From: Piromyces finnis finn
Lineage: Eukaryota; Fungi; Neocallimastigomycota
Direction: 5' to 3'
Assembly (NCBI GenBank): GCA_002104945.1
Contig: MCFH01000001.1
Location: 2,561,576-2,625,575 of the forward strand
Length of the DNA stretch: 64,000 nucleotides
In this document: piece by piece, positions 55,728 to 62,988 of the stretch
Layout of the letters: every line of letters starts with the position of its first letter
How positions within the stretch are numbered: position 1 is the stretch's first letter
The notes under the pieces: generated by a model
The model's input: only the letters and a program-made list of their open reading frames with translations
Told to the model about the DNA's origin: nothing
Databases searched by the model: none
Translations under genes and position numbers: made by a program

Positions 55728-57680
55728 TTATACAACTATTAAAAACAAGGTAACTATTATTAGTATAAAAAGATTAAAAGTAATATTTTTATTGTGATAA
55801 AAAATGGTACTACCAATCGACTGAGGAAGTGAATCCACTTCATCATAAGTAAATATAGAAGAAAATTTTGGTGTAGTATATCCTAATGAACCAACTTGAA
55901 TATCATCTAATGATTTTGGTATATCCATTGGATTATATTTAAGTAGGTATTTTACTTTATAACGAATATAAGTTTTTATTGGCATCGGTGATGTTAATAA
56001 ATTTTTTACATCAGTAACACAAAATAGGAAAAAATCAATATTATTAAGCTTTCCGGTTTTACCATTGAGATTCATTCTAGGCAGTAATAAATCCCATTGG
56101 ACGTCATTATAAATCATTTGAATTAACGATTCTATGTAGGCGTAAAGAACAGGGGTATTAAATGCTGTTTTAATGGTGTCATAAATAATAGTTTCAATCC
56201 TCCTGGAATATTCGTTGTAATCAATTTCTAATAATTTTGTTAATGGTTGACGTATTACCTCTATTTCAGTATTATAGGCGGATTGATTATAAAAATTACC
56301 TTTAATTTGTTTAGCAAATCCATCCGAACCAAAAGTAAAATGAAAATCTGTACTAATAAAATACCAACGATAATCTTTTTTTTCTTTATTAGCACTCTTA
56401 TACATATAATAATTACTCGCCCAAAAAAGATAATTATCAACTCCTTGACATAAATAGTCCAATACAAGACTACGTAAAAACGAATCGACATGAAAAATTT
56501 TTTTTTCAAAAAAAGCTATATTGTACTTTGTTAGTTCATCTATTTTTTTAAAAAATGGAAGTAATTGATCCTTTTTAGCTTTTTCTTCATAATCTTCAAT
56601 TGCAATATCCTTTTCTTTACAAAAACTACTTTTTTTTAATTCATAGGCTTTATATTTCATATCAGTAACATCAACATCATTACCATAATATATCATATTA
56701 CCCACACTAGTCATTACATTGTCAACTTTGAATAATAAGGCATCATCTTTCTTTTTAATTTCATTTCCATTATTTAGAACTTCTTTCATAAAATTATAAC
56801 TAGAAATATGATCGACCAAAGTAAACAAACCAATACTTTTTTTATTAATAATTAATCGGGTAAAGGTACATCCTTGAGTTGGTATTCCCATTGCATCGGC
56901 TAAACTATATACTAATTTTTCGCGAATATAAGTTGGATCTGATTGATTGGCTCTTAATTTTATTGCTTTTCTTTTATATAGTCCCCTCCCATTTTCATCT
57001 TCAATATCAGTGATTTTATAACTCAATTTACGATTGGTAATAGACCGATCACCACTGAGGTTAAAGGATACTTTTTGAAATACCTTGACTACATAGGGTG
57101 ATATGTAAATCATTTGAGCTTTTAAATCTTTATAATCTTTTGATGGATAATTGTGATACTTTTCAAGATTATCATAATTTTGTTGGTTAAATTGAAGTAC
57201 AATTGTTGAAACAAACCGATCATCAAAAAGCTCGGAAGGCTCAGTGTAATTAAATCGCTCATAAACCCTAGGAATGTATTTATGGTTGTAAAAATCATAT
57301 CTATTATTAAATACATGATTATAGGTTGAACTTTGAGAAATATTAAAAAAATGTTGCCTTTCAAATATTTCTTCTTCTATCAGTTTGGTTTTACTTCCTT
57401 TTTCATAAACACTAAAGTGATATTCAATATTTTCTTTATCCGTCAAAAAGTCTTTTGTCATCGTAAAAATATATAGAGGATAAAAATCAATTTCCATTAA
57501 ATATTTTTTCCCCTCGTACACTAAATATACATCAATTTCTTCTTCTGTAAATGCAAGTACCTTAAATAAAAATTCATTCTCATTTTTTAAACTTCGTTGC
57601 TTTAATCTAGAATGAAAAGAATAGGCATTAGTAATGAGCAAAAAAACCCATAAAATAATATATTTGTTATAAAAATTCAT
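55728..57680 (-). CDS. CotH-family secreted kinase with a C-terminal hydrophobic tail (probable GPI signal or TM anchor), 650 aa
   Basis: Signal peptide; LSGDRS, KLRANQSDPTYIREK, GLFTLVD, GVDNYLFWASNYYMY, WYFISTDFHFTFG; terminal LFILIIVTLFLIVV. Confidence 0.9.
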   Translation of the reverse strand: MNFYNKYIILWVFLLITNAYSFHSRLKQRSLKNENEFLFKVLAFTEEEIDVYLVYEGKKYLMEIDFYPLYIFTMTKDFLTDKENIEYHFSVYEKGSKTKLIEEEIFERQHFFNISQSSTYNHVFNNRYDFYNHKYIPRVYERFNYTEPSELFDDRFVSTIVLQFNQQNYDNLEKYHNYPSKDYKDLKAQMIYISPYVVKVFQKVSFNLSGDRSITNRKLSYKITDIEDENGRGLYKRKAIKLRANQSDPTYIREKLVYSLADAMGIPTQGCTFTRLIINKKSIGLFTLVDHISSYNFMKEVLNNGNEIKKKDDALLFKVDNVMTSVGNMIYYGNDVDVTDMKYKAYELKKSSFCKEKDIAIEDYEEKAKKDQLLPFFKKIDELTKYNIAFFEKKIFHVDSFLRSLVLDYLCQGVDNYLFWASNYYMYKSANKEKKDYRWYFISTDFHFTFGSDGFAKQIKGNFYNQSAYNTEIEVIRQPLTKLLEIDYNEYSRRIETIIYDTIKTAFNTPVLYAYIESLIQMIYNDVQWDLLLPRMNLNGKTGKLNNIDFFLFCVTDVKNLLTSPMPIKTYIRYKVKYLLKYNPMDIPKSLDDIQVGSLGYTTPKFSSIFTYDEVDSLPQSIGSTIFYHNKNITFNLFILIIVTLFLIVV

Positions 57681-58689: not shown

Positions 58690-61600
58690 ATGAAGTTATT
58701 ACAACAGTTTAATATTATATTTTTCATTAACTGTAGTCTATATTTAATAGGAGTGTATACAAGTATGTAATAAAAAATAAAAACAGGATTTATTGGGAAA
58801 AAAAATTGATTATTTTATTTTATTCACACTATTCATACTATTTATCTATTATATATATATATAAATTTTCATTTATTGAATATTTAATTAAATTATTAGA
58901 GGTTTATCAATTTAATGTAGTAGCACCAGTTGAGAGAAATACAACAGCCATAGGGTTAAATATAAATAATAATATTATTAATTTAGATGATACGGATTAT
59001 CCAATTTGGAAAGGGGAACTTGATATAAATGAAAGGACGCCATATCATTACTTATCTTATTCTGTATATAACAACAATGAAATAATAGAGGAAGAAAATT
59101 TTAATAGATCAATTCAACCATTAACTAAAAATTCTAATAAACTATTAAATGATTTTTTTGGAAGAATAAATACTTTATTTCAACATCCAAAACTATACGA
59201 TAAACGTAATAAATATTTCAGTAATGAATTTAACAATGAAAAAAAAAAATTCTCGGAATTATTTAGTGATCGATATATATCTACCATTTATTTTACCGGT
59301 CATTTTTCAAAATTTAAAAAATTAGAAAAGGCACATTACATGGATGAAACTATTCCTTCCTTAAATATTAATGCCACCATCATTACCCCCTATACTGTAA
59401 AAAAATATAATAATTTATTGTTGGAGATTAACCTTTATGCCGAAAATATAAATACAGATATATATACTTCATACTATTTTAGTAAATATAAAATTCATGA
59501 TCATATCAACTCAAATAAAAGCTCTTATTTTCTTACATTTAAGGATTATAGTTCTATTGAATCCTTATCCTCTTTTGACCTTAATGACTCTAATATCTAT
59601 AATAAAACGAGTATTCAACTTTTATCTTCATCTACAGACCGTCTTTTGATCCGTACTAAAATGTATACGGATATGTGTAATATAATTGGTATCCCATCGG
59701 TTGATGTAGGTTATACACGTATTTATTTCAATGATATTCCAATTGGATTTTATTTAATAAAAGAAAATCCAAATATACAATATTTTGAACAAAATTATAA
59801 TACTTTAAGGGAATATAGTCAAATAGACGGTCATTATTCTCCAATGGATTATGTTGGCGATTTTAATTTGACATCATCAGATCCAAAATTATTAAATAAT
59901 AAAACTACAGATAATTATTCAAGTTTTTGGTATCAAGGAAAAAAAGATCAAGATATTTTTCATTCAAAAGAAGATATTGCTTCTCTTTTTAAAAATTTTC
60001 AACCACCCACTTCTTTAGACGATATTAAAAAGAATTTTGCTGTTGATCCTTTTTTAAAAAATATGGCACTTGATTATATTGTTAATAATCAGCATGGATA
60101 TTTATATAATGGCACTAATTATTTTTTATACTACGAAAATGTAAATACTTTTTTTTTTTTTTTTTAACATTTTAAATATTATAATTTTTTTATAAGTTCA
60201 ATTTATTATTTTCATTGCATTATCTAATATTTATTAACTTTTTTTTAATGCTTAATATAACCAAATTTCTTCATATATATTATATTTAAAAACGAAAATA
60301 TAAAAAAAAAAATTTAAGAATAATAATAAATGGAATTTTCATGAAGGATATTATACTTCACCATTTAATAATTGGAGTAAAAATTTCACTTTAATTGATT
60401 ATAAATCATATCGTTTTATGGGAAAGGGAGAAATTGATATTGAAAGACCAACATTTGATTATTTAATGTCATTCCCAAATTTACAAAATCTTTTTGAAAA
60501 TTATTTGAAAAATATTTCATTAGAACTTTTTGGAACTGTAAATTATTTCAAAAGAATGGCTAGTATTTTCAATATGATAAATGATGATTTAAAATGGGAT
60601 ATTTTACTTCATCCTGTATATAATAATACTGTACTCACTGAAAATGAAAATAGAATGTTCAAATTTTTAAAAATTAAAAATGATTATGAATATTTAATGA
60701 GATTTATATCCAGTAGAAAGGAACGTATAATAGATTATTATGGATTTTCTATTCCTTTCAATATCTACTCTTTATTTACTACTGCATTTTTAATTTCATT
60801 AGTAGTAATATTACTTCACCTTCTTTATGCCGTGCTCATTAATCCTTTTGTATGGAATATCTCAGACAAAAATACACGAGTTTTACCCCATACTTTTCTC
60901 AAACTTTGGGCACTTGCTATAGTTTTGTTAATTATTTTGGTTACATCAATTTATTTCTTGATTAGATATAATTTAACTGATAATTTTATTAAAAATATAC
61001 ATAGAAAAATTCATAATTACATTGTTAGTTACTATGGTACTTACAATCAGACCTACATTAAATTAACTATTATATTATGGTTAATTCTTAACAGAGAAAG
61101 TTTTCTTATTTTCTTAGGGGCTCCATTTGTTCCTTGGCCGTCGTTTAATAAAAAGAAATTAATTAATATTGAAAGTGATAGTAATAACTCTTTTTATTTC
61201 AATAACTTATATGAAGAACAAACCGAAAATAATTACACTACTACTAAAACATTGAGTAACAATTATTCAAGTACCACATTTATCAATAGTAATATTGATT
61301 ATGAATTAAGTGAAACAAATTCATATAGTTTTGATGTAAATCATAATAAAAATATAAATAATTTTAGTCATTCTGATCCTGATTCGTGTATTTCTGATAT
61401 GGGGGACGTGTCTATAATAACTGAGTCTGTAAATGAGAAACTTAGTAGTCACAATTATAGAGAAAGCATCATATCAAAAGAAGAACTCTTTCACTCAAAA
61501 TATAATCCTTCGTATACGGATGAACAATCAAAAATAATTTCTATGTATCAAAATATTAAGCATGGTTTTTTAATTGTTTGTCATAATAGTTCTGATGTAT

Positions 61601-62988
61601 TACCAGCAACCCTGGAATGTTTATTGAAAGTAACTACTCCAATGTGCATATTTATAGCAGAAAATGGTTCCAATCCCGAAGAAAAACAAAAAATGAAAGA
61701 AATAATAGATGAATTTAGCATCAAGTTTCGCTTAACTCACCCTAGCTATCAAGGATTAAATATTATTTATGCTAATTTAAATGAAGGCTCTAAAACCTTG
61801 GCTCAGTTTTGTTTACTAAATAATTTATTTTGGTTCGGTATAAATATTAAATATATATCTGTTATTGATGATGATGTACTAATTCCGGAAAATTGGGTGG
61901 AAGAAGAAATTCTGAGCTACTTTAATGATCCTAAAGTAAAGGCATTAGCTTATCCTATTACTGCAAGTAATCGTCGTGAAGGTATTGTACCTGCTTTTCA
62001 AAATTTTGAATATATTCTTTCAATGTATAGTAAAAAAATTCATAGAGATATTGGTACAGTTGTATTTCCAAGTGGAGCAATGGGTACATGGAGCATTCCA
62101 TTTTTATTAGAATGTCTTTATCTTCATGATACAGTATTTCGTGGAGATGATTTACAACTTGGACTTCGACTTCATACTATGTACGGAAAACCTCGTTTTT
62201 GTGATCCTAATAATATTCATGATGGTAATTATAAAATTGAAATGGCTCATGTTACTGTAGATACTTTTGTACCGGGATGTTATATACATTTAAAGGAGTA
62301 TCTTCCTAACTTTTTAGGAAAGTATCTAAAAGATTGCGCATGCGGTCAATATTCCCTATCACGTCAACGTATTGTGTATTGGGAACCTGCTCGTCATCGT
62401 TTTCTTTTAAAATTTTTAGACTGTATCTTCCATAAGTGTAAATTAAATCATCGAGCTACTCTTACAGCTAAATTGTTTTGTATTGACTTTGTTGTTACTG
62501 TTTTTAATGATTATCTTTTTATTGTATTATTGGTATATATGTTTTTAATGAAATCCTTTTTGCCTGCTTTAATGATTATATGTATTTGTTTTGCTCTCGC
62601 CTATCTTAGTTTAGATATTTTCAATATAGTTATTGCCAGAGGAAAACCAGAAATTAAGCTACCATTTGAAGTTTGTGTCATTTTCCCTATTTGCTATCAA
62701 TTTGTTTCTACTCTTTTCTATAGAATTTCTACCATTATCTACACTTTATCCTATTATGTTCCTTTTGTAAGAAATAACGTTAAAATTAACAAGAGAGCCC
62801 TTAAAAAAGATATTAGTAATATGACTATGAATGATATTTTTACTGAGACCGATTCTGAAAAAGCTATTGCTTACGTATCTGATGTATCTATCTATTTAAA
62901 TAATAGAAAGAGATCAAAACGTAAAATAATAGATGAAAAGATGTATTTATTTAAGAATAAGTTTACAAAGGAAACAAAAAATATATAG
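58690..62988 (+). CDS. 3-exon fusion of signal peptide, CotH-like (pseudo)kinase ectodomain, 3 TM, cytoplasmic GT2 glycosyltransferase and C-terminal TMs, 1327 aa; exons 58690-58762, 58900-60140, 60319-62988
   Basis: Splice sites A|GTATGT..TTAG|AG and AAT|GTAAAT..TTAAG|AAT give 3984 nt in frame. CotH-like TDRLLIRTK, GFYLIKE, NGTNYFLY|NNNKW. GT2 motifs IVCHNS, VIDDDV, SGAMGTW, FRGDDL, LSRQRIVYW. Confidence 0.85.

Follow-up and report, generated by a model that had tools for sequence, protein, structure and literature searches.

A CotH ectodomain fused to a membrane-integrated, synthase-like GT2 enzyme in anaerobic gut fungi

We analysed a stretch of 64,000 nucleotides (nt) of the Piromyces finnis genome (assembly GCA_002104945.1, contig MCFH01000001.1, positions 2,561,576 to 2,625,575 of the forward strand), which is referred to below as the window. 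Three exons on its plus strand, between positions 58690 and 62988, were shown to form one gene for a multipass membrane protein of 1327 amino acids (aa), in which a CotH domain is joined to a synthase-type GT2 glycosyltransferase. The fusion was shown to be conserved across the anaerobic gut fungi (Neocallimastigomycota). The alignments show that its CotH domain has lost both aspartates that Bacillus subtilis CotH needs, and structure prediction shows that the membrane-embedded GT2 part has the fold of processive synthases, namely hyaluronan synthase (HAS), IcaA, NodC, chitin synthase, and BcsA.

In anaerobic gut fungi and Mucorales, few protein families are as expanded and as poorly understood as CotH, and we know of no CotH substrate in fungi. 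The family is hugely expanded in gut fungi, with 348 copies counted by one survey across two genomes of these fungi (PMC10079182), and CotH is present in about 20% of their dockerin proteins, where its role is unknown (PMC8665504). In Mucor, cotH mutants showed an altered wall and chitin composition (PMC9973265). No paper on a CotH-GT2 architecture was found in the literature searched, in agreement with an earlier note on this DNA, made from the letters alone, which knew of no described fusion of the two. This type of extracellular module on a membrane-integrated GT2 synthase is new, while the proteins themselves are already public as hypothetical proteins.

One gene of three exons

Two open reading frames (ORFs) are listed at the locus, one of 453 codons ending at 60167 and the other of 856 codons spanning 60418-62988. 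When 58690-58762, 58900-60140, and 60319-62988 (+) were joined, a sequence of 3984 nt with 1327 codons and a single terminal stop was obtained. The in-frame join of three exons proposed in the earlier note was thus reproduced, and it is supported by the alignment of orthologues and by mRNA contigs of a relative. The G+C content of the window was about 10-15% between genes and 22-33% within genes.

Exon 1 (58690..58762) contains the start codon and a signal-peptide-like N-terminus in 24 codons plus one base, which gives a phase-1 junction. Intron 1 (58763..58899, 137 nt, GTATGT..TTAG, phase 1) was placed by reading the DNA and by the frame of the join. Exon 2 (58900..60140) encodes an N-terminal beta-rich module and the first two thirds of the CotH domain, as located with Pfam, and is followed by intron 2 (60141..60318, 178 nt, GTAAAT..TAAG, phase 0), which lies within the CotH domain and was placed by DNA reading and orthologue alignment. 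Exon 3 (60319-62988) encodes the end of the CotH domain, the transmembrane (TM) helices, and the GT2 domain; the introns and the other exons lie on the plus strand as well. From its N-terminus, the protein consists of a signal peptide, a beta-rich module, the CotH domain, three TM helices, a disordered linker, the GT2 domain, membrane and interface helices, and a basic tail.

The junction codon of intron 1 is AAG (Lys25), and Lys was found at the matching place in the orthologues P0003, P0008, and P0011. In these three and in P0015 the hydrophobic N-terminus continues directly into the ectodomain. The P. finnis orthologue has a separate first exon of 26 codons and is annotated with an identical three-exon structure. 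An intron at the position of intron 2 was also found in P. finnis and Anaeromyces robustus, both with GTAAGT donors. In an alignment with seven orthologues, the end of exon 2 (..NYFLYYEN) met the start of exon 3 (NNNKWNFHEG..) with neither gap nor overlap.

Three independent metatranscriptome contigs of 4.3-4.4 kb encode P0003, each with one unbroken fusion ORF of 4305 nt. One of them terminates in 22 A, and this poly(A) contig (L001) has no intron 2. Because of the unbroken ORF and the poly(A) run, we take these contigs to be mRNAs of a 65%-identical relative carrying the entire fusion. Moreover, exon 3 already encodes, unspliced and in a single ORF, the GT2 domain together with the final third of CotH, and this ORF has neither its own start codon nor its own signal peptide before residue 472.

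RNA of the isolate was available as the assembled contigs of one low-depth run (X1), and these contigs matched parts of exons 2 and 3 with zero mismatches. One RNA contig, covering window positions 60829-61199, skips 60917-61044 (128 nt) with CT..AC ends on the plus strand; on the minus strand the skipped segment is a canonical GTAAGT..TATAG intron, seen in a single contig at depth 3. This is evidence of a spliced antisense transcript that crosses the part of the gene encoding the TM helices.

The deposited model of the locus, P0001, has 763 aa and begins at Met565 in the helical stalk of the CotH domain; it lacks exons 1 and 2 as well as 126 codons at the start of exon 3. The deposited annotation is accordingly truncated and should be corrected.

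Conservation in anaerobic gut fungi

Every close protein relative came from anaerobic gut fungi. A search with the exon 3 product retrieved proteins with both Pfam domains in Neocallimastix californiae (P0002), A. robustus (P0004), and metagenome-derived sequences (P0003, P0011, and P0012); the P. finnis model P0008 shares this architecture. Orthologues with this architecture are therefore present in three named genera (Neocallimastix, Anaeromyces, and Piromyces) and on metagenome contigs. The models of N. californiae, A. robustus, and P. finnis provide the recurrence in related genomes by which the earlier note proposed to check the fusion; those of N. californiae and A. robustus were already in the databases as 'hypothetical protein'.

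CotH ectodomain

A Pfam scan with hidden Markov models detected CotH (PF08757) in exon 2 and GT2 (PF13641) in exon 3, as the earlier note had anticipated. The CotH match in exon 2 (E 3.7e-12; 46.8 bits against a cutoff of 23.8) covers positions 11-198 of the 322-position profile and stops right at the end of the exon. In P0003 the match comprises residues 226-568 and profile positions 12-321 of 322 (E 6e-16) and crosses the position of intron 2, which bears out the claim that the CotH domain spans this intron. The last third of CotH and a helical stalk (residues 439-586; 60319..60762, +) were assigned by orthologue alignment and lie in the same ORF as GT2. The CotH match of the P. finnis orthologue is under the Pfam threshold.

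The scaffold motifs D..IR.K, FL..LA.DY, and NY.LY are retained. A profile built from fusion ectodomains only was compared by hhalign with that of the CotH family of the divergently oriented neighbouring gene described below, giving E 4e-46 over 511 columns; the fusion profile was built without this neighbour, which would otherwise have been in both alignments and inflated the E-value. By protein-language features (Atlas), the ectodomain was nearest to Mucoromycota CotH clusters, with a score of 0.96. The neighbour-family profile in turn reached the Bacillus cereus CotH structure 5jd9 (E 1.3e-6). No CotH was retrieved from the PDB by sequence, whether the query was the CotH profile of the fusion or the neighbour protein alone. 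A word-indexed search returned four fragments only for the ectodomain and gut-fungal CotH only for the neighbour, with no bacterial CotH.

In B. subtilis CotH, D228 and D251 are essential, and the D228Q and D251A mutants were inactive (PMC7821199). The chain of 5jd9 has D224 (QNFDGF) and D247 (PWDYD), which are 23 residues apart, the same spacing as D228/D251, and which align with D415 and D445 of the neighbour. In the fusion, the catalytic-Asp position (B. subtilis D228, B. cereus chain D224) is occupied according to the alignments by His423 in NNQHGY (codon 60093..60095, +), and the loss of the catalytic-loop Asp described in the earlier note was thus confirmed; H, Y, or N was found at this position across orthologues. 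That note had also placed a loss of the DxD metal motif in WNFHEG. There is indeed no conserved Asp at the DxD place, and none in residues 439-470 across orthologues, but WNFHEG is not the equivalent segment; the true place lies 4-8 residues downstream, in GYYTSPFN (60346-60369). The metal-Asp position (B. subtilis D251) corresponds to Tyr449 in an ungapped register against B. cereus and P0052, a second fusion described below, with GYY or GYF as the context in orthologues, and to Pro453 in the hhalign register, with a shared SPF context. Taken together, these replacements suggest that the CotH ectodomain is probably inactive as a kinase. Asn431, which corresponds to the Asn five residues past the B. 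cereus catalytic Asp, is kept in the window protein and the orthologues, and WN(Y/F)HEGY is strictly conserved in all orthologues.

Approximately the first 100 residues of the ectodomain may form a carbohydrate-binding beta-sandwich before the CotH fold. A sub-threshold match to the starch-binding domain CBM20 was observed at window positions 58902-59200 (E 0.022) and in P0003 (E 0.12). No dockerin match was obtained with Pfam in either exon piece at E up to 0.1.

Membrane-embedded GT2 part

Hydropathy and the structure model agreed on three TM helices (residues 587-619, 628-653, and 682-705; 60763..61119, +) before the synthase-type GT2 domain, as the earlier note had described, with an amphipathic helix between TM2 and TM3. 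They are followed by a Ser/Asn-rich linker (residues 706-839; 61120..61521, +), which was recognized by its composition and its low confidence in the model, and whose length differs among orthologues. The GT-A (GT2) catalytic domain with interface helices (61522..62430, +) was delimited by PF13641 (33.2 bits, cutoff 27), the invariant residues, and the fold matches. It contains DDD (61867-61875; residues 955-957), GDD (62143-62151; 1047-1049), and QRIVYW (62365-62382; 1121-1126), all on the plus strand. The three motifs named in the earlier note are thus present, and D955, D957, D1049, Q1121, R1122, and W1126 (D391, D393, D485, Q557, R558, and W562 in P0001) were invariant in 58 homologues, with G1047 nearly so. 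QRxxxW lies on a helix just past the GT domain, and its spacing and the position of its Arg differ from canonical QxxRW.

C-terminal membrane helices were assigned by hydropathy and the model to residues 1150-1181, 1185-1210, and 1221-1254 (62452..62766, +), and they align with those of Chlorella virus HAS (CvHAS), IcaA, and BcsA. The first two are clearly hydrophobic and the third is more polar; this third helix may serve as an interface helix, as IF3 does in hyaluronan synthase, and the Lys/Arg-rich tail would then be cytosolic. This tail (62767..62988, +), as seen by model and hydropathy, includes a long amphipathic helix (1281-1326) and ends at the stop. In addition, C1111-x-C1113 (62245-62253; C547 and C549 in P0001) in a CxCG motif and two His (H477 and H493 in P0001) were invariant or nearly so across the GT2 family. 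The CxCG motif and the two His might form a metal site.

The structure of P0001 was modelled with an alignment of 58 diverse homologues, giving a mean predicted local distance difference test score (pLDDT) of 85.5 and a predicted template modelling score of 0.83; an earlier alignment of 14 close orthologues had given a pLDDT of 44. The pLDDT was 83-98 over TM1 and TM2 and 73-94 over TM3, and only the Ser/Asn-rich linker was disordered (pLDDT <50 at model residues 175-237). The top Foldseek match in the PDB was CvHAS (E 7e-10, TM-score by target 0.56-0.58), and Xenopus HAS1, yeast Chs1, oomycete and Candida chitin synthases, and BcsA were matched as well. Against the Swiss-Prot models the top match was IcaA (TM-score by hit 0.70, root-mean-square deviation 4.3 over 433 columns), with streptococcal HasA, NodC, and HAS2 among the further matches. 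VIA-align gave Z 17-18.5 for PcManGT, CvHAS, and BcsA (Z 16-17 for BcsA), over ranges from the third TM helix through the last membrane helix. In the superposition with CvHAS, model residues 119-690 lay on chain residues 38-451 with the membrane parts included, which was also the case for IcaA and BcsA. In the model, the TM and interface helices are thus packed on the GT domain as in processive synthases.

The wider GT2 family and a second fusion

An exhaustive profile search with the GT2 region yielded 354 representatives at E <1e-3. Named members come from the chytrids Powellomyces, Caulochytrium, and Gaertneriomyces, from Basidiobolus, from the holozoans Capsaspora and Chromosphaera, and from Barthelona and Andalucia; all of them are annotated as hypothetical, and NCBIfam gave no meaningful name for the family. 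Sequence profiles of the family matched none of the solved synthases, and of chondroitin polymerase they matched the N-terminal half only; the family is therefore remote from solved synthases.

The common layout is a signal peptide, a large N-terminal region, about three TM helices, GT2, and about three further TM helices, with short forms lacking the N-terminal region; this layout with an optional large N-terminal region recurs in the chytrid, Capsaspora, and Chromosphaera homologues. Pfam analysis of 48 long N-terminal regions detected H-type lectin in five and CotH in one (P0052). Examples of H-type lectin are found in the distant members P0100 (770-832), P0121 (688-750), and P0149 (520-580). 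Matches to kinesin, Mpp10, and stray GT2 in N-terminal regions look like gene-model artefacts. The chytrid N-terminal region had no similarity to the CotH profile.

In the GT2 tree, the window-type gut-fungal clade (Shimodaira-Hasegawa-like approximate likelihood ratio test, SH-aLRT, 100) was sister to Caulochytrium plus Powellomyces (98). It follows from this position that the synthase was vertically inherited and that CotH was added in the gut-fungal lineage.

The second CotH-GT2 fusion, P0052, was found on contigs that are AT-rich and resemble those of gut fungi (21% G+C). It has a signal-peptide exon and an N-terminal module of its own, three TM helices, and an intact GT2 domain, which belongs to another subfamily together with Gaertneriomyces and Basidiobolus (SH-aLRT 99). 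A tree in which all fused GT2 domains were forced into one clade was rejected by the approximately unbiased test (p-AU 0.006), a value to be read with the caveats that the group was named after the tree had been seen and that P0052 is on a long branch. In the CotH domain of P0052 the catalytic Asp is intact (HNWDNY), and the DxD place is taken by E-Y-D. CotH thus occurs on two subfamilies of one GT2 family, once apparently active and once degenerate. Its presence on two subfamilies points to a functional link and not to an accident of gene prediction, and the Asp kept in P0052 indicates that 'pseudokinase' is a property of the window-type clade and not of the CotH-GT2 fusion as such. The P0052 gene lies within positions 1-7194 of L006, a metagenome contig of the Joint Genome Institute, and has no intron inside its CotH domain.

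Neighbouring CotH gene

The divergent neighbour (55728..57680, -) encodes a 650-aa CotH protein (Pfam E 4.8e-29) with a signal peptide and a C-terminal hydrophobic tail. It shares the N-terminal module with the fusion ectodomain and keeps D415, Asn423, and D445, with His at the second Asp of DxD. Its deposited model, P0165, has 577 aa only. The head-to-head pair was considered as a conserved module and rejected, as no such pair stands next to the P. finnis or A. robustus orthologues. P0052 at L006 is also head-to-head with a free-standing CotH gene, the product of which has canonical D..N..DYD residues.

Proposed mechanism and alternative explanations

We consider it somewhat better than an even chance that the protein is a plasma-membrane synthase exporting a beta-linked polymer under a non-catalytic CotH-fold module that binds, guides, or wall-anchors the chain. 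The signal peptide would place the CotH module outside the cell (lumenal during transport), and the odd number of TM helices (TM1-TM3) would put the linker and GT2 in the cytosol. There, GT2 would use a UDP-sugar: DDD would be its motif for metal and nucleotide, GDD would supply its second Asp as the catalytic base, and the Trp of QRxxxW would lie at the acceptor site. The beta-linked polymer would be pushed through the synthase's own channel, and the chain would emerge beneath the CotH-like module. The nearest folds all use UDP-N-acetylglucosamine (UDP-GlcNAc) or make GlcNAc-containing polymers; by this analogy the product could perhaps contain GlcNAc, although the nearest folds are weak evidence on this point. 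The CotH module would act without kinase chemistry, by binding, guiding, or wall-anchoring, in a manner analogous to periplasmic BcsB on BcsA.

Several observations weigh against this reading, beginning with the gene itself. In the one low-depth run, no RNA contig of the isolate crosses intron 1 or intron 2, and splicing in the isolate is consequently strongly inferred from homology and not observed; owing to the antisense-spliced contig, sense expression in the isolate is not proven; and the deposited model contains the GT2 part alone. The GT2-only model and the lack of an isolate contig bridging intron 2 would suit two separate genes, one for a membrane-anchored CotH protein and one for a GT2 enzyme, whose fusion is merely the product of optimistic splice prediction. 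We regard two genes as highly improbable, because the ORF of exon 3 holds the last third of CotH together with GT2 and lacks a separate start codon and signal peptide ahead of residue 472, exon 2 stops in the middle of a domain, the relative's mRNA contigs carry the entire fusion, and the position of intron 2 is conserved. In the protein, the loop between TM2 and TM3 is somewhat more basic than one would expect of a loop on the outside.

The strictly conserved WN(Y/F)HEGY might build a non-canonical active site, in which case the ectodomain would still be an enzyme, a kinase or another nucleotide-dependent transferase with relocated catalytic residues, whose substrate in the secretory pathway would be the nascent glycan or wall proteins. 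Glu447 in this motif is two residues ahead of the lost metal Asp, N431 is kept, and the HNWDNY and E-Y-D of P0052 suggest that kinase chemistry is used beside this synthase family. However, the variation among H, Y, and N at the catalytic-Asp position shows no catalytic constraint there, and the metal-Asp position is Tyr or Pro, depending on the register, in all orthologues; we judge an enzymatic ectodomain to be unlikely. Slightly less likely still, in our estimation, is that GT2 is a single-transfer membrane glycosyltransferase that makes glycolipids or glycosylates proteins, and that the ectodomain is a receptor or adhesin sharing only the polypeptide. PcManGT, a small membrane GT2 that is not established as a polymer synthase, had the highest Z (18.5), the motif is QRxxxW instead of the canonical QxxRW, and the sequence profiles stop short of any solved synthase. 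On the other hand, approximately 370-450 positions including membrane helices superpose on HAS, IcaA, NodC, Chs, and BcsA, and the GDD base and the interface-helix Trp are invariant.

Comparison with known systems

The window protein has in common with class I HAS (Chlorella virus and Xenopus HAS1; PDB 7sp6, 8snc, and 8smm), IcaA, HasA, and NodC the membrane GT-A domain with DxD and a GDD-type motif, the interface helices, and the TM bundle, with the best structural matches extending over about 370-450 positions. Identity is 12-17%, and the window protein has QRxxxW where these have QxxRW. It also has an extra N-terminal TM helix and a 560-residue extracellular CotH-like module, and its long disordered linker has no counterpart in the aligned parts of the HAS relatives.

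BcsB is the extracytoplasmic partner of BcsA; it sits over the channel exit with one TM anchor and handles the emerging glucan. The likeness to BcsA/BcsB, a module outside the membrane over a synthase, would be a functional analogy only. Whereas BcsB consists of carbohydrate-binding and flavodoxin-like domains, the module of the window protein has a kinase fold and is covalently fused at the N-terminus.

The Bacillus spore-coat kinase CotH (PDB 5jd9/5jda) shares PF08757 and the scaffold motifs with the window module. In contrast to it, the latter has both essential Asp replaced, lies outside the cell, has an additional module at its N-terminus, and is joined to a synthase. The dockerin-bearing cellulosome CotH proteins of gut fungi (PMC8665504) and the CotH proteins of Mucorales (PMC9973265, PMC10079182) are likewise secreted or surface proteins of early-diverging fungi; unlike these, the window protein has no dockerin and is anchored through the synthase, not through glycosylphosphatidylinositol or a C-terminal tail. 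Finally, the members of the eukaryote-wide GT2 family are true homologues of the window GT2 with the same invariants and TM-GT2-TM layout, the chytrid proteins being the sister group. The named homologues differ from the window protein in their non-CotH N-termini, and some distant members have H-type lectin.

Significance

The conserved covalent link of CotH to a HAS/chitin-synthase-like enzyme, on two GT2 subfamilies, provides CotH with a concrete and testable functional partner, namely a polysaccharide of the cell surface. It also brings to light that synthase-like GT2 enzymes form a eukaryote-wide, uncharacterised family in which the N-terminal regions are interchangeable (CotH, H-type lectin, and unknown ones), and the products of which could be new wall or matrix polymers. 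Going further, it is possible, though we hold it only tentatively, that the fusion serves as a 'Rosetta stone' for fungal CotH, in that CotH folds of early-diverging fungi act on surface polysaccharide leaving a synthase, by phosphorylation in the intact paralogue and by binding or guiding in the degenerate one. If this is true, it would account for the large expansion of CotH in gut fungi as well as for the defects in wall and chitin seen when cotH is mutated in Mucor.

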